DNA of 64,000 bases from Selaginella moellendorffii (lineage: Eukaryota; Plantae; Lycopodiophyta). Position 1 is the stretch's first letter, and every line of letters starts with the position of its first letter. Where the stretch lies: positions 3,654,443 to 3,718,442 of the forward strand of contig NW_003314265.1 of assembly GCF_000143415.4 (NCBI RefSeq). Direction: 5' to 3'. A program made the position numbers and the translations under genes. This document shows, piece by piece, positions 3,172 through 11,419 of this stretch. The notes below the pieces were generated by a model that saw only the letters and a list, made by a program, of their open reading frames with translations, was not told where the DNA came from and did no database searches.

Positions 3172-4696
3172 ATGGCGGAAGCGTGCCGGATCTTCGAGGG
3201 CGTCGCTCGTTCTGAGAGCGGTAAGGAATATCTAGCTCTAGAGATATTTCACCGCATGCGCGCTGAGGGATGTGCCCCGGATTCGCCGAGCTTTGTCGCA
3301 GCGGTCAAGGCGTGCTCCAATCTGGCGGCCAAGGAGGAGAGGCTCGAATTTTCGCCCGAGATCCGTCTATTTGCACACTCAAGCTGACAGGTATGGAGTT
3401 CTTTCCGACGTCTACGTGTGTAACGTGCTGAGAATTGAGGAAGCTCGCGGAGTCTTTGAGGGATTCTCCTGCCAAACGTTGTGTCGTGGACGAGTTTGAT
3501 CCTGGGGCACGAGCTGCCAAACTTGTGATCGAATGGGACTGTACAGTACGTCCTGAATGGTGAGAACAAGGTAGGCATGTTTTTCTTCTCGCTCATGCAG
3601 TGCGAGGGATGCGTGCCAGATGGTCAAGCGTTTTGCGGTGCTCAAGACCTTCGGCAGCTTGGCAGCGAGAACAAAAGGCTTTTCCAGGTGTTTAGATCGT
3701 TTTGCTCGCAAGTTGTGAGCAGCGGCTTCGAGTCTGATGTGTTCGTTGCCACCGCCATGGCTGGCAACATGGTGGAGGCCCGCAGAGTTTTCGAAGGAAT
3801 GGCCCGTCGAGACGTTGTCTCCTGGACGACAATCATACTGGGACACGCTCAAAACGGTGAAGCCGAGGTGGCCTAGGATTTCTTCTCAAGGATGCAGTCG
3901 GATGGAGGGTGTGTAGCGCACGCCAAGGTTTTTGTTGCTGCAATCCTGGCGTGCGCGATACGCAAGAGCCGTTCCAGCGAATCGATGGGACGCTGGTGAA
4001 GCTCCGAGCTTTGGAGAAAGGGATGGAAGTTCACAGCAGAGCAGCAAAGCACGGTTTTGATTCAAGAGACGTGTTCGTGGGAAGCAGTTTGGCCGATCTT
4101 TACGGCAGCTTGGTGGATGCTCGACGAGTTTTCAACGGAATGCCATCACAGGACGTGGTTCCATGGACGGCATTTGTCCTGGCATACGTAGAAAACGGGG
4201 AAGCCGAGACCGGGCTGGAACTGTTTGGACAGGAAGGCTGCGTTCCCGGTTGGCCGGATTGAAAGCCTGTACTTGGCTGGCAGCACTACAGACAGGGAGA
4301 CAAATTCGCACTCAAGTCTGTGAGAGCGGCCTTGAGAGAAACTTGAGTTCCCTGGTGGACTTCTATTGCGAGTGTGGGAGAATGGGTGAAGCACGACAGG
4401 TATTCGATTTATTTGGTTCTTAAACGAAAGACACTATGATTTGGACGACAGGATACAGTCGCCAAGGCCAGACAGAGAGCGCTATCGACTTCTTCAACCT
4501 CAAGCAAGACAGAGGCCTCCGTCCAGATGCCATCACTTTCACGTTTATCCTCGCCGCTTGCAGCCATGCCGGCCTGGTTGACAAGGGAAAGGAGTACTTC
4601 GAGCTCAAGCACTACCGGAGGGTGGTGAGGCTGGATGAGAGGCATGGCGCGGCCTTATCCATGGCAAATATCTATTGGAGTCTCAGGATGGTGTAA
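3172..4696 (+). pseudogene. PLS-class pentatricopeptide repeat (PPR) pseudogene
   Basis: PPR motifs spread over several frames with stops: MRAEGCAPDSPSFVAAVKACS, EARRVFEGMARRDVVSWTTIILGHAQNG, PDAITFTFILAACSHAGLVDKG. Confidence 0.85.
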
Positions 4697-4824
4697 GAAG
4701 AGTTTCAAGTGCTGGCAAGGAGGAATGAGTTACTGATAGCAGGAAAGAGATAGCAGGAAGGAGAGCAAGCTTAGATTACATCTCGTTACAGAGCGGTAAG
4801 CAAATCTTTCTTACTCTTCTCTAC

Positions 4825-5748
4825 CTACATGACGCCTTGATGTTTCAGGATTTCTCCGATGAGCTCGCCTTCGCGGATGAAGAGAAACGTCGGCACCTCG
4901 ACGACGTTTCGCTCCTTGAGGAAGGCCATGCAGTCGTCGTTCTCGTCGCCGTGCATGCGCGCAAACACGGCCGTGTCGGCCATCTTCTTGGCCAGCTTGA
5001 TGACGGTGGGGTACACTTTCACGCAGGGGCCGCAGTGCTTGAGACCAACGTCGAGGACAACGAGCTTGTCGTCGTCCCTGTGCTTCCGGATGAGGGCCTC
5101 GACGTCGCCGCGGCTGTGGAGCTGGGTGATGGCCTTGGAGGAGTCGCCATAGTAGAGCACGTCCCCGAGCAGCATGTCCTCGGTGATGCCTTCCTCCTCG
5201 TGGACCTTCTCGCCGCTCTTGTAGAAGATGAAGTGGGGGACCTTGGCGACGCCCTCCCGGCGGAACATCTCCTTGGTCTCCTCCGACTCGTCAGCCAGTA
5301 TGAGGCGGAAGACAACGTCCGGGCACGTCCGGCTCAGCTCCACCATGGCCGGATATATCCGCTTGCTGTTGACGCTGTGGCTCTCGGCGTACTCCACCAC
5401 CACCAGCTTCTCGCCCGCGTCCCGCAGCATCGCCTGGAACTCGAGCTCCGTGGATATCATCTTGACGGGATCCTCTTTGGTGGCGCTGCCATTGCCTTTG
5501 TTTCCTTTGGCCGAGGAGGTAGCAGCACCACTGGGTGCTGCTGTCGAAGAGGAAGAAGACGAAGAAGAAGAAATTGGCGAAGAAGCTCTTGTTGGTCTTT
5601 CCAGTCTGTAGCACACGTCTCCAATTCCTGGCAGCCGAGCTGTTCTAGAGCTCCTCCAAGCAGCTAGTCCTCTATGGCTACCTCTCTCCCAATTCTTCCC
5701 ACCCCTGCTAGCAGTGAGAGACGATGAGGCTCCCAAAACTCCTGCCAT
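4825..5748 (-). CDS. CDSP32: Chloroplast double-thioredoxin protein CDSP32-like, intronless
   Basis: S/R-rich transit peptide from ATG 5748, first Trx fold with SxxS (ESHSVNS), second with [10 protein letters not shown] and EVPTFLFIR. Confidence 0.92.
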
Positions 5749-5989
5749 GGCTGCCCGGCTCAAACTCTCCAGCATCTCGTCGCCCCGAGAGGATAAGAGT
5801 AGTGCCAAGTTGCTCCACTCCTCCAAAATATAAAGTGGATATCCTGATAATACCCGTTAAGTTTGGCTTTGATCGCTCTCTTTGCTTCGATAGTCTCGTG
5901 TCTCGATAGTAAAAGTGGTGCCCGGACGTTGACGGGAAAAAATCTCTTTCGCGGTCGTAAGGCTTTGGTTTAGTTTGAGGGGTCTCTTC

Positions 5990-8269
5990 TCACGAGTACT
6001 TAAACTTTTTGTGCGAAGGCGAGGCCACGATGACTCTCTTTAGGCCCGTGTCCACGCCGTCGTGGTCGCAGTGATCAGTGTATGTAGTCCTCCTCGACAA
6101 TCTCGGGCCTGGCGATTCCCTCTCCTCCACTTTCTTCCACCTTGAGTTCCGGCTTGACGAGGAGGCCTCATCGCGCTTTCGTTTCCTGCGTTCCTCGTGT
6201 TCCTCCCGTTTCTTTTTCTTGTGCTGCTTGGAGTCGTCCGGCCTGTGTCTCTTCTTGTACTTGAACTTCTTCGGCTGCATTGTGTCGGCATCGGGCAGCT
6301 CCTCTATTGGATCGAAAAAGTACGTGCAAGCCTTAGCGTCACCGGCCGTCGCGCGCTTCCTGTTGGTTAGAATGCTGTCGCCGCGAATGATTCGGCCCAG
6401 TATTCCAGTATTTCCAGTGTTTGCAGTAGTCGTTGCCAACAGCCTGTGGGCAAGGACGAATGCCGCACGGATCTACAACAAGCAGCTCTTGTAAACGTAT
6501 ACACATCACTTTAAAATCTTCTCGCGTACCTTGGGAATCTGGAAAGAGTTCTTTCCTATATCGTTCTCTGGTGCCTGGAATATGTAAGCGTTTTACTATC
6601 TGCAGTACAAATATGTAGAAATAATACCTGAGGATCCTCGACAGCTAGCAAAAACGGCCGTTTGTAATCAACAAACCTGCAAGTTGGCATCACAAAGAGT
6701 CCTTGACCAAACAGAATATATTAAACTCACCCCTTCGAAACCTTCGAGAAAAACCTTCCACCGTCAGCGCAAGAGACCCCAACCTCTCTTATGTTGAGAC
6801 TACGACCAAACAAATCAAAGAAGTCCAGCTGCAATAAAATATAGAAATGAGAGATTCAGATGGAACAAAATTCGTGTGTACTACCAGCAAAACACCCAGA
6901 TTAGTTTCGAGATTGCCGCCATGATGCCGACTCGGGTGCATCTGGGAAGAAAGTCAATCAGCCGATAATACAGAAGTCATGATATGCTTTACCTGAAGAT
7001 GCGTAATGAGCATGATTAGAAGACCATATGAGCCTATTCCACCACAGTACACCTACAACATCAACGGTTAAACCTTTCCTTGCCATGATCAAATTATACC
7101 TCATTCAGTTCTCTTTGTTGAAGAAAGATCTTTAGCACCATGCATAAAGGCCGCAGAGGAGGCAAAGTTCCAATAGCTCGCTGTTTGGAAGGCGCACGGT
7201 CACATACAAAAATCCTTCTAACTTTCATAATGAAGTCACCTGTATGAACTTTGCTGCTTCGGGTCCATTTCTTAAATCGAAACTAAGGAGCGGAAGAAAA
7301 GGAAATTCAAGACGAATGAAATGGCTTATCACGCTGCTTCACCTGATATCAAATGAAATTCCACTCGTTGATTCCACAAACTTTATAATCGGGACGCGTG
7401 CTTTTGATATGATCTGCATCAAGACAGCAGTTAGTTGTGATTCCAATTACAATTGTCTACCGTTATTTTCCTGGCCAACTTTCGCTTCCTAAGCTCTATG
7501 GAAATTGCTCTAAGACCGCTTACGATCCTATCGCATCCTGAGTCTAGAATCACAGCCTGCAATTTTTGTGTTCAGAAAAGAGAAAACTAAACAAATCAGA
7601 ACGGGCTGTCTTACATCAATGTCGCTCGTCGGAAGATAGAGCCCAGTAGCATATGATCCAAAAATTTCAATCTAGAACCAAAAGAAACAAGGCTGGATTC
7701 ATAATCAAGAAAAAAGAACGAAGCGGACCTTACAGTGTGACCACAGCGACTTTATCGCATTGCTTATACGATTAATAGCTGCAGCACGTTCGGCCTCTTC
7801 CTCCACAGTCGGTGAGATGAACGTACAAAAATCTAAAATCTCTGAAGCACAGAAAAAAAAAATGAGCTCGTTAGCTCCCAGAAAAAGTGCGCGAACCTTG
7901 ATGGAGCTGGAGCACTGGACTCCGGAAAGTCGTTTCTCTAGCCTCCATCCACGGCCAAATCTTCTTGTCATTGTAGTTGTCCACTTCCAGGTCCAACTCG
8001 TCACTGGCGGCGAGATTTACCAAGGCCTCGTCGGGATCCTCTTCCTGCTCCACGGCTTTCACAAGCCCGTCGACAGCGAGCGAAATGTAGTCAATCTCCG
8101 CCTCGCCATCGCTGATTTCAATCACGCTTCCCGGAGCGGCGGAAGCACCCGGATTTCCATCCTCGCTTCTCACAGCCGGCGCCTCTACAATCTCATCTGC
8201 GTCACCTAGGGCGAAATCCATGCCGATCGGCGCCAGTCGATCGTAGACGAACGCATTGCTGCCTTCCAT
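5990..8269 (-). CDS. TRF4/PAPD5-like non-canonical poly(A) polymerase (multi-exon)
   Basis: Spliced motifs LHQEILDFCTFISPT and IFGSYATGLYLPTSDID (nucleotidyltransferase GS...DxD), ARVPIIKF, basic K/R-rich C-terminus. Confidence 0.88.
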
Positions 8270-8285
8270 GGCCGAGCCGAGCTAT

Positions 8286-8294
8286 AAACCCTAG
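8286..8294 (+). promoter_or_regulatory. Telo-box-like AAACCCTAG in a 134-bp bidirectional promoter, which also has a CCAAT and a GA repeat
   Basis: Motif seen between divergent ATGs 8269 and 8404. Confidence 0.5.
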
Positions 8295-8403
8295 CTAGGG
8301 CGAAAAGATTCTAATTTTAGGGGAATATCCCGCCGTGAGCTGCGGCCAATAAGAACTGCCCACGTCACTATTGTGGAGCACCGAGAAAGAGAGAGAGAGA
8401 GCG

Positions 8404-10378
8404 ATGGCGCCTGGAGCCGCGACTTCCGAGCTCGAGAGCTTCGCTCAAGAGAGAGGAGTGGAAAATTTCCTGGTATGTAAACGAGCAGCGATCTCGAGCG
8501 CCAGGGTCCTAGCTAAAGATTTGCGAAAAAACAATCAATGCAGATAAGTTTCGTGGACCTATTAGGCGTGTCTCGAGCGAAGCTCGTTCCAAAGTCGGCA
8601 ATCCGCGAGATGGAGATCAAAGGAGCTGGGTTTGCTGGCTATGCCGCACACTTTGACATGAGTCCAGCAGATCCCGACCTGGTGAAGCCAATAGAAAAGA
8701 GAGAGTGCGACTTAAAAAGAGCGTTTTTTTCTTCTAGTTTGCGGTGCCTGATCCTCGAAGCGTGATCCAACTTCCATGGAAACCAGCAGTAGCTTGGGTG
8801 GCCAGCGATTTGTACATGAACGGCAAGCCCGTACAACAGGATCCTCGCAGAGTCTTGCGAACTCAGGTGTGTCAAAACTCTTTTCTTGAGAAGAATTCAT
8901 AGCTTTCACAGGTTGAGATTGCCGAGAGTAAACACTTGAGGATGAAAACCGGGGTCGAATGCGAGTTTTTCATCCTGTCCGGAGGTAGCGATGTTCATCA
9001 GCTGTCGGACCGATTGGATAAGGCAGAGAAACCAGGCTACGAACAGGTAAGAAACAGGGAAAAATAGAAGAGAGAAGAAAAACAGAACTTGTTGCTTACC
9101 ACCAGATTGCTCTCATGAGACGGTACGACCTGATCGCGGAAGTTCTTCACTACTTGGAAGTTCTTGGATGGAAACCATATCAGGCTGATCACGAGGTTCA
9201 AGCTTTTGGTTTTTCTCGTCATCATCTTCCCAGCTTCTTTTTTCTTGCTCCAGGATGCAAATGGTCAGTTTGAGATTAACTGGGAGTATGACGATTGCAT
9301 CGCTACTGCTGATAAGCACGTCTTCTTCAAGTTCATGGTGAAATCACTAGCTGAAAAATATGGTACCTCTTCTTTTCTTTCTTCGCTTTCTCGAGCTCTA
9401 TCGATTGATCTCCTGTGGTCTTTTCTCAGGTCTCAAGGCGACGTTTATGCCCAAACCTTTTGTAAACCAAACTGGCAATGGAACACATTGCCATGTCTCG
9501 GTCTGGGATACTTCCGGCGAGCACAACGTTTTCCTTGACAAGCAAGACAAGCTTGTGAGCTTTCCCCAGTCTTTTGCCTTCGTTTTGATATCTTTCTCTA
9601 TTCTTGCAGGGATTGTCCACGACTGCTTATGAGTTCCTCGGAGGAGTGCTCCAAAACACCAAGTCGATCACTGCCATTCTCAACCCCACCGTCAATAGCT
9701 ACAAGCGCATCGATGGAAGCACCACCCTTTCTGGCTCTTCATGGGCTCCTTGCTCCATCGCATACACTGGAAACAATCGTACTCACTTAATACGGTACAA
9801 AAGGCCAGATAACTTCCGTCGTTGCAGACTTAACAAGCTTTTATGCAGCATACCCGACGGTGGTCGATTCGAGCTTCGTCTCGCAGATGGAGCAGTCAAT
9901 CCATATCTTTTCCAAGCTGCCATCTTGGGTGAGTTTCAAGTGATTTACGTGTAGCTCTGAACCTCGCAACTTTCTCGCAGCTTGTGGCCTTCACGGGCTT
10001 GATCATCACGTCCATCCGGGACCATCAGCCGATTGGAACGGCCATCTTCCGCCACCTGAAGGGAAGGTAGCGAGTTTTCTCATTCTGTCCTTCGGAAGTA
10101 GAACTCTGTAGCATGGCTGTTGTTTTCGTTTTTTTTCTTTTCTTTGCAGGCAGTGCAAATTCTTCCCACCAGTCTAGCCGAAGCTCTGAAAGAATTCTCT
10201 GCTTCTGCCACCTTGAGAAAGGTAAGCTTTTGCTTTCTCGAGAGCTCTTCTTATCCTTGTGCGACAGGCCCTTGGCGAAGAATTTGTCACGAGCTACTCG
10301 AAGATCCAGACTGAACGATGGAGATCCTTCACACAACACTTGAGCAAATGGGAAATCGATAACACCATTGACTGCTGA
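8404..10378 (+). CDS. GlnT/GmaS-type gamma-glutamylmethylamide synthetase-like ligase (glutamine synthetase superfamily), 12 exons
   Basis: Spliced protein: ISFVDLLGVSRAKLVP, GAGFAGYA, VIQLPWKP, KTGVECEFF, DHEDANGQFEINWEYDD, ADKHVFFKFMVKS, ATFMPKPF..TGNGTHCH, NPTVNSYKRI, SWAP, GNNRTH, RFELRLADG, ending WEIDNTIDC*. All 11 introns are GT-AG. Confidence 0.9.
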
Positions 10379-10407
10379 AACTCGAAACCTCGTTGCAATG
10401 CAAATGG

Positions 10408-11419
10408 CTACTTTGGGATACGCCACCGGCTATTCTCTCCCGAAGTTTTCCATTTTTCCGAGCTCTTCAGTTTCGCCTTCCATTCCTTCTTAGATGCTCC
10501 CTCCTCATCCTCATTCTTCACTTGCAAGTTTGCCTCGTCGTCGTCTTCATTCCCTTCTCTAATCCTTTTCCCCTCTGCTTGGAGATCCCCGATCATCATC
10601 TCCGTCGTCTTCGTGGTTATTCCTCGAACATACCATGAGACTGGCGGCGGTGGAATCAGAACTGGCTGAACTTCCTGATGGAGATTCACAAGTGACGCTA
10701 CTCTGCCTGCTTCACCCGGCTCACCATCCACGTAAAACGGCTTTATCTCCCAGGTTCCTTCAAATCTCTTCATAAATCCTTCCTTGGCTAGCTTGTAGCT
10801 AACCTGGGAAGGAAAACGAATCGTCAGTAAGTTTGTGCTACATTAAAATCTCCTCACCGTGTGTGAGCTTTGATCCTCGTCGACAAGCACACGCACGTCT
10901 ATAGTCCCTGAGAACCACAGGAACTTCCAAATGGCAGCTTGCTCGACCTCTACAAGCTGCCTGTTGTTCTCGGCTTTAATCACCTTGCGGTATTTTACCT
11001 CCTAGAGATTCGAGCTAAAGCAGGAACACAAAAACACGAGAAAACTGACCTTGATGTTCTTGAAGACGCGCTTGTTTCCTGGATCAGTGATGATCCCAAA
11101 CACAGCTTCCGGTGGGAGGCCAACTTTAAATGTGGATTTCAAGTGGCACAGAGTTCCTTTGGGAACAGTAACCTGGGAAAGTAGCAACAGCCAGTCAAAA
11201 CCAATCCAGTCTATCCTACGCAACGCTCGTACTGCAGTGATCGGCGGCTCATCGACCCAGGATGGGTTGCTTCTCCACAGTTTGAGCTGATCCCAAAATC
11301 TCTCCCGAAAAGCCGGCACCGAATCCCTCGATTCCTGGAAGACATTGCGATGTGCTTGCTCGAATCAGTCACCAGCGAAAACCCTCGCTTACCTCGGATT
11401 TCGCTGAGTCCCTGTCCAT
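10408..11419 (-). CDS. DUF220 / START-like (polyketide cyclase fold) protein, multi-exon
   Basis: [65 protein letters not shown]. Confidence 0.85.

Follow-up and report, generated by a model that had tools for sequence, protein, structure and literature searches.

The 64,000-nucleotide stretch of Selaginella moellendorffii DNA analyzed here (the window) carries what we read as an expressed plant gene for a small-amine ligase of the GlnT/GmaS family, which would have been acquired from bacteria by an ancient transfer and retained under purifying selection; we assign this joint account a probability of about 0.62. Window positions 8404 to 10378 hold a true nuclear gene of this seedless vascular plant, which is expressed. 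The encoded 442-amino-acid (aa) protein is, as judged from its sequence, a member of the bacterial GlnT/GmaS (gamma-glutamylmethylamide synthetase) family, whose members are otherwise almost confined to bacteria. We infer its substrate and its place in the cell, as well as the donor and the timing of the transfer.

Twelve spliced segments on the forward strand (Table 1) form a 1329-nt open reading frame (ORF) of 442 codons that ends with the stop codon TGA at 10376 to 10378. All 11 introns have GT..AG borders, with lengths of 71, 56, 45, 59, 58, 67, 55, 54, 52, 83, and 46 nt, a range in keeping with a spikemoss genome. At all 11 joints, RNA-type assemblies from three studies (X2, X5, and X12) skip exactly the modelled lengths. 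An in-frame TAA (8350 to 8352) lies 54 nt upstream of the first ATG, inside the transcribed leader. The intact gene of 12 exons and 11 introns proposed in the preliminary description is thus recovered as a spliced 442-codon ORF with every joint present in three RNA-type assemblies, and each of the motifs quoted there (FAGYA, SSWAP, DHEDANGQFEINW, and ADKHVFFKFMVKS) is found in the spliced protein.

Table 1. Features of the GlnT/GmaS-type gene in window coordinates
Feature	Position	Strand	Evidence and sequence features
5' UTR, minimum extent	8321..8403	+	X5 contig (RNA-type) with start at 8321; TAA 8350-8352
Exon 1, start codon, aa 1-23	8404..8472	+	RNA joint 8471/8543, skip 71
Exon 2, aa 24-69	8544..8681	+	RNA joints; TIGR03105 15-61; Lys of RAKLVP (RhGmaS Lys30'), FAGYA loop (Ala for GSI Asp50')
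Exon 3	8738..8866	+	RNA joints; TIGR03105 62-104
Exon 4	8912..9046	+	RNA joints; TIGR03105 106-150; VECEF (Glu122 equivalent), KPGY (Tyr147 equivalent)
Exon 5	9106..9195	+	RNA joints; TIGR03105 152-180; 3' end YQADHE (Tyr174, Gln175, Asp177, Glu179 equivalents)
Exon 6	9254..9362	+	RNA joints; TIGR03105 181-215; DANGQFEINWEY (Glu186, Asn188, Trp189, Tyr191 equivalents)
Exon 7	9430..9554	+	RNA joints; TIGR03105 218-255; GNGTHCHVS (His237, Ser239 equivalents)
Exon 8	9610..9794	+	RNA joints; TIGR03105 260-320; NPTVNSYKR, SGSSWAP (Trp for GSI flap Glu; RhGmaS Trp300), GNNRTHLIR (Arg312, Arg317 equivalents)
Exon 9	9849..9928	+	RNA joints; TIGR03105 322-347; carries IPDGGRFELRLADGAVNPYL
Exon 10	9981..10066	+	RNA joints; DWNGHLPPPEG, a signature common to the other two plant-type sequences
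Exon 11	10150..10221	+	RNA joints
Exon 12 and stop codon	10268..10378	+	RNA joints; TIGR03105 401-434; end ...WEIDNTIDC*

The family model TIGR03105, which carries the NCBI label "type III glutamate--ammonia ligase" (NCBIfam TIGR03105), was the top match for all nine of the exons scanned, in profile order and spanning positions 15 to 434 of 435, while the models for GlnA, gamma-glutamylputrescine synthetase, and PRK09469 ranked below it on every one of these exons. The nine exon scores total approximately 395 bits with exons 1, 10, and 11 left out; the whole-protein cutoff of the model is 469.6 bits. Pfam Gln-synt_C was found on six exons. Among structures in the PDB, the best chain was 7cql, the GmaS of Rhodovulum sp. 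12E13 (RhGmaS), followed by 9qur, a glutamate--methylamine ligase. In two trees, the core GlnT clade, with the plant sequences within it, was separated from six to eleven other glutamine synthetase (GS)-like representatives with support values of 100/95 and 100/98. The assignment to GlnT/GmaS and not to GSI made in the preliminary description is therefore upheld by the best-scoring model on the scanned exons and by the nearest structure.

The likeness to RhGmaS extends over the entire protein, as the two are of the same length and align end to end, including the C-terminal ...TLDC region (7CQL; PMC7948447). Differences lie in features common to the plant clade, namely, GFAGY for GFAGF, KPGY for KPCY, SGSSW for SGATW, and a DWNGHLPPP loop, and in the genomic setting, as the window gene lies in a eukaryotic nuclear genome, contains 11 introns, and does not reside in an operon with N-methylglutamate pathway genes. 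The glnT genes of Sinorhizobium meliloti pSymB and of a Leptolyngbya BL0902 plasmid belong to the same family model, and their products share 54 to 55% full-length identity with the window protein (whole-protein comparisons were local alignments against retrieved sequences). The annotated neighbors of S. meliloti glnT are a glutamine amidotransferase, a GXGXG-domain protein, and a glutamate synthase; inspection by eye of the ORFs over the first 20 kb of the window revealed no such neighbors.

Other classes of GS fit the protein less well. Bacterial GSI (GlnA, TIGR00653) has the GS fold, Gln-synt_C, and the NSYKR, NRS/T, and ELR motifs in common with it, but Escherichia coli GlnA has FDGSS and GYEAP where the window protein has FAGYA and SSWAP (PMC9310647 supplement). 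At the Asp50'/Ser53' site, Ala, Tyr, and Ala thus replace the Asp, Ser, and Ser of GSI, and Trp replaces Glu327 of the flap. NodGS proteins consist of an N-terminal amidohydrolase or nodulin domain joined to a GSI-like domain, with a total length of about 850 aa. The window protein comprises 442 aa, is preceded by an in-frame stop codon, and can be aligned with bacterial GlnT from residue 7 onward to the C terminus; the absence of an N-terminal fusion rules out the NodGS/FluG type. True GSIII (GlnN, of the Bacteroides/cyanobacterial type) is about 700 aa long and likewise was rejected on length. The "type III" in the name of TIGR03105 is a naming coincidence. For GSII (GLN1/GS2, about 360 to 430 aa), no recognized plant GSII was among the PDB matches with E values up to 1e-3, all of which were named GmaS/GlnT or generically "glutamine synthetase," and the sequence blocks of the window protein are unlike those of the GSII sequences in PMC9310647. 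The earlier statement that the protein is neither plant GSII nor NodGS accordingly stands, because the PDB matches contain no GSII chain and the N-terminal fusion is missing. KnGLNA of Klebsormidium (PMC9310647), considered as an algal relative, has neither the GFAG loop nor the DHEDANGQFE block and, as judged by eye, belongs to a different GS-like family. Its resemblance to the window protein, like that of NodGS/FluG-type proteins, is that of non-GSII, prokaryote-like GS-fold proteins present in plants or streptophyte algae. The entry "glutamine synthetase from CFB bacteria" in a list of genes transferred to Physcomitrella (PMC3493653) is presumably of a different GS class as well, given its donor.

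All RhGmaS residues compared were kept in the window protein (Lys30', Glu122, Tyr147, Tyr174, Gln175, Asp177, Glu179, Glu186, Asn188, Trp189, Tyr191, His237, Ser239, Arg312, and Arg317), including those named as ATP, amine, and catalytic residues, and the positions of GSI Asp50' and the flap Glu are occupied in both proteins by Ala and Trp (the Ala48' and Trp300 equivalents, in GFAGY and SGSSWAP). Equivalences were read by hand from alignments leading from the window protein over Leptolyngbya GlnT to 7cql, and the roles in catalysis, ATP binding, the amine pocket, and ammonium handling by GSI Asp50' and the flap Glu are those of the RhGmaS study (PMC7948447). As the RhGmaS active site is kept and the GSI Asp50' and flap Glu are absent, the reaction is most likely the gamma-glutamylation of a small primary amine of the methylamine/ethylamine type, with ammonia as a poor substrate. 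The gamma-carboxyl group of glutamate would be phosphorylated with ATP, as in other GS-fold ligases, and the amine would then attack the acyl phosphate, for which the spikemoss enzyme appears to have retained the acidic amine pocket and the equivalents of the catalytic Asp177, Glu186, and Arg312. Only from conserved residues, however, do we infer alkylamine or theanine-like chemistry, and these cannot tell methylamine specialists apart, since they are common to all members of the GlnT family.

The first description of rhizobial GlnT (GSIII) was that of a weakly active glutamine synthetase. The window enzyme might likewise be mainly an auxiliary glutamine synthetase acting on ammonia, a third GS type beside plant GSII. 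Its fold and its ATP, glutamate, and metal residues are the same as those of GS, and RhGmaS uses NH4Cl with an equal kcat, although with a Km of 8.7 mM versus 27 uM for methylamine (PMC7948447). We nevertheless regard this as unlikely, as Ala occupies the ammonium-binding and -deprotonating position of GSI Asp50', Trp occupies that of the flap Glu, and plant GSII is already present in Selaginella as SmGS1.1 to SmGS1.4 (PMC9310647). The small-amine ligase would probably be cytosolic, because the 442-aa protein has no N-terminal presequence. Among ORFs of 110 aa or more within the initial 20 kb of the window, no N-methylglutamate synthase or dehydrogenase genes (mgsABC, mgdABCD) were recognized by eye.

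The gene is not confined to this spikemoss, as it has counterparts in two plant-type sequences, two intronized algal-type genes, and a transcript from Paulinella. Plant B (L003) has 66.5% identity to the window protein, and 10 of its introns match those of the window gene in position and phase, with one further intron present; plant C (L007) is a cDNA-like contig. These two sequences and the window protein form a clade with 100/100 support in both trees and have the DWNGHLPPP loop in common. A second eukaryotic clade adjoins the plant clade and is composed of the algal-type genes L006 and L008 and the Paulinella chromatophora transcript (EukProt EP00457_P004382; P0040), all of which resemble the window protein as eukaryotic members of the GlnT/GmaS family, with 44 to 52% identity to it. 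In L006, two of seven introns agree with window introns in position and phase. The window protein has no counterpart of the roughly 70-aa N-terminal extension of the Paulinella protein or of the presequence-like N terminus of L008. L003 to L005 were obtained from SRR33208280, SRR33208281, and SRR33208273, L007 from JGI 3300031034, L006 from ERZ1764451, and L008 from ERZ27293255.

Further searches for relatives differed in what they could reveal. With the stop-free stretch 9607 to 9951 (exon 8, read-through intron 8, and exon 9) as the query, matches among representative sequences were all at most 73% identical, the informative ones being the eukaryotic fragments P0101, P0108, P0088, and P0040, and a search of fragments returned one plant-type match (P0457). 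A metagenome scan with P0457 is uninformative on relatives, as the matches listed were all at most 59% identical, were drawn by a generic NPTVNSYK pattern, and did not include the contig from which P0457 itself derives. A profile built from Paulinella, an algal fragment, and exons of the window gene and L003 (A3) returned Paulinella and then bacterial GlnTs. Upon local rescoring, the window protein would rank second with 601 bits; therefore, the exact window protein was absent from the A3 candidates. In this search, bacterial sequences would come ahead of orthologues with about 66% identity, and the outcome is uninformative on other plants. Alignments of many short exon fragments together, or of such fragments with an unrelated carrier sequence, were dropped because MAFFT scatters the fragments.

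Identity to bacterial GlnTs was similar across groups, at 52 to 56% for cyanobacterial and 53 to 58% for alpha- and gammaproteobacterial sequences, with a full-length maximum of 58% against P0328. Bacterial species representatives reached at most 57% over the full length and, among the matches listed in a scan of GTDB genomes, at most 66% over exon 8, all of these matches being from Pseudomonadota. A profile of Leptolyngbya GlnT and five window exons (A2) returned 120 cyanobacterial GlnTs and no other group. The bacterial sampling for the trees consisted of the returns of three sequence searches and one genome scan. The GlnT backbone has no resolved branching, and the plant clade was nested in neither the rhizobial nor the cyanobacterial GlnT group in either tree.

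An ancient bacterial origin of the window gene fits these trees. In the account we favor, an ancient transfer of a bacterial GlnT gave rise to the ancestor of the window gene; it would be older than the divergence of three or more plant-type species and may be common to some algae. The old horizontal transfer from bacteria postulated in the preliminary description is consistent with the trees and with the 10 introns in common with a plant at only 66.5% identity. The GlnT phylogeny envisaged there bore out a GlnT clade apart from the GS-like representatives. Vertical inheritance across algae and land plants, named there as refuting, may partly apply, since monophyly of the six eukaryotic sequences was not rejected (p-AU, 0.39). 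If so, the transfer would be very ancient rather than absent.

Endosymbiotic gene transfer from the cyanobacterial plastid ancestor, followed by vertical inheritance in green plants, appears improbable, if only slightly more so than an enzyme working mainly on ammonia. GlnT is widespread in cyanobacteria, including Gloeomargarita, whose members are the closest living relatives of plastids; a placement of the plants with the crown cyanobacterial clade was not rejected (delta lnL, 8.7; p-AU, 0.12), and intronized algal-type relatives exist, with the two matching introns of L006. However, the plant clade lay outside the crown cyanobacterial clade (starred support) in both trees, the second of which placed that clade among proteobacterial sequences with Gloeomargarita deep inside. 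Moreover, cyanobacterial identity is no higher than proteobacterial identity, and the plant protein has no transit peptide.

A recent transfer from a soil or rhizobial alphaproteobacterium to the spikemoss lineage alone is very improbable. The first tblastn matches on plasmids were mostly Rhizobium and Sinorhizobium glnT, a dominance that is due to what the plasmid collection contains, but S. meliloti GlnT is only 54% identical over its full length, ten of the 11 introns are common to a plant that is just 66.5% identical, and forcing the plants beside the group of S. meliloti, Marinibacterium, and Hyphomicrobium cost 23.6 lnL units (p-AU, 0.07). With this constraint and with comparable identities to cyanobacterial, alpha-, and gammaproteobacterial GlnTs, the rhizobial tie drawn in the preliminary description is not sustained. 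Bacterial contamination or an assembly artefact, for which the bacterial affinity of the protein is the sole point, can be practically dismissed, as the preliminary description had argued from the introns, because the gene is fully intronized with spliceosomal GT..AG introns precisely removed in the RNA-type assemblies, is spanned with both flanks by two colinear, abutting contigs of an independent DNA run (X1) that has zero splice joints and retains the introns, and is flanked by ordinary plant-like ORFs (thioredoxin-like, PPR, GMC oxidoreductase, and mitochondrial carrier, as judged by eye).

Purifying selection on the window gene is evident. Of 145 alignment columns that are at least 93% conserved among 39 bacterial GlnTs, 136 are kept, and allelic differences amount to 5 per 1329 exonic nt (4 of them synonymous) versus 20 per 646 intronic nt. 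Such selection would have acted on the gene since its transfer.

Treatments of how plant glutamine synthetases evolved cover GSII and NodGS-type GSI-like genes. The Selaginella entries in PMC9310647 are GSII genes only, and no description of a plant GlnT/GmaS was found in the literature searched. The transfer in itself is not surprising, as early plant lineages are known to have received numerous genes in this way (e.g., PMC3493653). The gene nevertheless offers a clean, testable case in which an ancient bacterial gene has become fully adapted to its plant genome, and the introns in common with algal-type genes bear on the timing of such transfers. Tentatively, and with considerable doubt, it can be proposed that an anciently acquired GmaS-type enzyme persists in seedless plants, and perhaps in some green algae, as a second, GS/GOGAT-independent entry of nitrogen, from small amines (methylamine, ethylamine, and the like) to gamma-glutamyl amides. 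If true, its role could lie in scavenging, in detoxification, or in making theanine-like metabolites along a path that has no relation to the enzyme of tea. Plant nitrogen metabolism would gain an unrecognized branch, namely, alkylamine use or gamma-glutamyl amide production, from such a conserved, expressed enzyme in a vascular plant.

Twelve coding segments, read across 7900-10900 and spliced at GT..AG boundaries, gave an open reading frame of 1329 nt (442 codons) with a TGA stop at 10376-10378 and an in-frame TAA (8350-8352) preceding the first ATG. Both ends of this model agree with the coordinates 8404-10378 proposed in the preliminary description, and all four motifs quoted there (FAGYA, SSWAP, DHEDANGQFEINW, and ADKHVFFKFMVKS) were found in the product. 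The introns are 71, 56, 45, 59, 58, 67, 55, 54, 52, 83, and 46 nt long, and such short lengths are in keeping with a spikemoss. The public runs aligned to positions 8200-10700 comprised one DNA run and three RNA-type assemblies, each from a different study. All 11 splice joints were present in the RNA-type runs, with skip lengths exactly as predicted and GT..AG ends, and one RNA contig begins at 8321. The DNA run contained zero joints; its two colinear, abutting contigs keep the introns and reach into both flanks. These data establish a real gene whose transcripts are spliced according to the model. The last-exon RNA-type contigs from region 10271-10700 continue beyond 10700 across a minus-strand open reading frame (10408-10773), which may reflect a 3' untranslated region overlapping a convergent gene or two transcripts merged in the contigs. 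One RNA-type assembly labelled as a second organism (X12) carries the same gene as the DNA run and another RNA-type assembly from organism A, and its alleles at 8984, 9010, 9873, and 10270 also occur in the organism A runs; this points either to a very close relative or to a difference in labelling.

Contamination was ruled out by the introns, the splicing, the continuous and independent DNA-run coverage, and the plant-like neighbouring reading frames (by eye, thioredoxin-like, PPR, GMC oxidoreductase, and mitochondrial carrier), in agreement with the earlier argument from full intronisation.

The product belongs to the GlnT/GmaS family, as originally proposed. Pfam Gln-synt_C was matched by six exons individually, and the NCBIfam GlnT model TIGR03105 (gln_synth_III) was the top match for each of the nine scanned exons, colinearly from profile positions 15 to 434 of 435; the GlnA and gamma-glutamylputrescine synthetase models scored below it on every one. 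A tblastn search of plasmids with exon 8 returned 351 records, and the annotated matches among those listed were nearly all glnT. The full spliced protein is 54 to 55% identical end to end to the GlnTs of Leptolyngbya BL0902 and Sinorhizobium meliloti pSymB and 53 to 57% identical to 13 named GTDB representatives among the matches listed, the highest value among about 400 bacterial proteins compared being 58%. Among solved structures the closest match is 7CQL, gamma-glutamylmethylamide synthetase from Rhodovulum sp. 12E13 (RhGmaS), followed by 9QUR (glutamate--methylamine ligase), with GSI enzymes far below both in structure-chain scores. Relative to bacterial GlnT, the protein is not extended at its N-terminus; it is therefore not of the NodGS/FluG fusion type, as had been stated before, and is probably cytosolic. 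Nor is it GSII, no plant GSII entry having been recognised among the PDB matches. KnGLNA of Klebsormidium, described as GSI-like (PMC9310647), was rejected as a relative, being by eye a member of another GS-like family.

Active-site residues were mapped by hand from the alignments of 7CQL to Leptolyngbya and of Leptolyngbya to the plant protein. In RhGmaS, ATP is bound by Glu122, Tyr174, Gln175, Trp189, Tyr191, His237, Ser239, Arg312, and Arg317; the amine pocket is formed by Tyr147, Gln175, Asp177, Glu179, Glu186, Asn188, and Lys30'; catalysis involves Asp177, Glu186, and Arg312; and Ala48' and Trp300 occupy the positions of Asp50' and the flap Glu of GS (PMC7948447). By alignment, the plant protein retains every one of these residues, within the blocks RAKLVP, GFAGY, VECEF, KPGY, YQADHEDANGQFEINWEY, HCHVS, SSWAP, NNRT, and HLIR. 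Of the 145 alignment columns with conservation of 93% or more across 39 bacterial GlnTs, it keeps 136, and the nine altered columns are mostly conservative substitutions. Haplotype or strain differences number 5 in 1329 nt of exons (four synonymous) and 20 in 646 nt of introns. Judged by these comparisons, the enzyme is under purifying selection, with a predicted GmaS-type active site that is intact.

Five other eukaryotic genes were obtained by searching representatives with the stretch 9607-9951, which contains no stop codon, and by a fragment search. Plant B is represented by intron-retaining, DNA-like contigs from three Logan-assembled runs (L003-L005). Its protein, rebuilt for residues 70-442, is 66.5% identical to that of Selaginella moellendorffii, and wherever comparable its intron positions and phases are the same, with one additional intron dividing exon 8 and intron lengths of 90 to 265 nt. 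Plant C (a cDNA-like JGI contig, 59 to 67% identity) shares the signatures SGSSWAPC, CDWNGHLPPP, and WELDNTLDC. In the metagenomic gene L006, two introns match those of the Selaginella gene in position and phase (after ...YDQ and within the Arg codon of H-x-I-R|IPD), and a third lies one nucleotide off the additional intron of plant B. This gene adjoins Rieske, aldo-keto reductase, and fatty-acid desaturase genes. The algal-type gene L008 has a presequence-like N-terminus, its upstream frame resembling an organelle presequence (MLSRALLRRSPSALLHARALS...), and neighbours an OTU domain gene. The Paulinella chromatophora transcript (EukProt EP00457_P004382), whose product is extended by about 70 amino acids at its N-terminus, clusters with the algal-type genes and not with cyanobacteria.

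Intron-containing GlnT-type genes on environmental and algal-type contigs
Gene	Position	Source	Features
L006 GlnT-type gene	3858-5602	ENA ERZ1764451 contig k141_1094124, metagenome	440 aa; seven introns, 53-73 nt
L008 GlnT-type gene	5847-7480	ENA ERZ27293255 contig k119_450777, algal-type, 62% GC	three introns

Two trees were computed under LG+C20+F+G4, one of 56 rows and one of 57 rows that also included 13 named proteobacterial species and had its root placed on other GS-like families. In both trees, support for the clade of three plant sequences is 100/100, and it lies within the core GlnT clade; the backbone of the core clade is a polytomy in the 57-row tree. L006, L008, and Paulinella form a second clade (92/95 and 98/92, respectively). 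Both eukaryotic clades fell outside a starred (97/94) clade containing crown cyanobacterial and proteobacterial GlnTs in the 56-row tree; the best 57-row tree united all six eukaryotes with weak support (51/17). In AU tests, a single clade of six eukaryotes cost 0.14 lnL (p = 0.39), a grouping of plants with crown cyanobacteria 8.7 (p = 0.12), and one with the S. meliloti/Marinibacterium/Hyphomicrobium group 23.6 (p = 0.07). The rhizobial character initially ascribed to the gene was not borne out. Cyanobacterial GlnTs occupy two places: a crown clade including Gloeomargarita lies among proteobacteria in the 57-row tree, and a very divergent group (Nodosilinea, Shackletoniella, and Leptolyngbya KIOST-1) branches basally to the core clade as a whole, which suggests transfers among bacteria too. 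In S. meliloti pSymB (L002:1-3534), the genes immediately upstream of glnT carry the annotations glutamine amidotransferase, GXGXG-domain protein, and glutamate synthase. This arrangement resembles that of N-methylglutamate synthase genes, which would link the S. meliloti "GSIII" to methylamine use.

Since the great majority of the family is bacterial and the eukaryotic sequences lie inside the GlnT radiation, the simplest interpretation is that the gene originated in bacteria. The transfer is old, predating the divergence of three plant-type species now about 60 to 67% identical, and was possibly common to algae as well. The proposal of an old, fully intronised bacterial gene is supported.

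No description of plant GlnT/GmaS was found in the literature searched. Among the transferred genes listed for Physcomitrella is a "glutamine synthetase", not further specified, with CFB bacteria as the stated source (PMC3493653); it was not matched to GlnT/GmaS. The exact 442-amino-acid product, which would have ranked second, was absent from a profile search of a public protein collection; its protein sets may be missing the gene model or contain a different version of it. In these profile searches, plant orthologues at 66% identity were not separable from bacteria at 55 to 58%. The gene adds a new eukaryotic (plant) member to a known enzyme family, and the alkylamine or theanine function initially proposed for it is putative. 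Because the Km of RhGmaS is far lower for methylamine (27 uM) and ethylamine (58 uM) than for ammonium (8.7 mM) (PMC7948447), the plant enzyme would be expected to prefer alkylamines.
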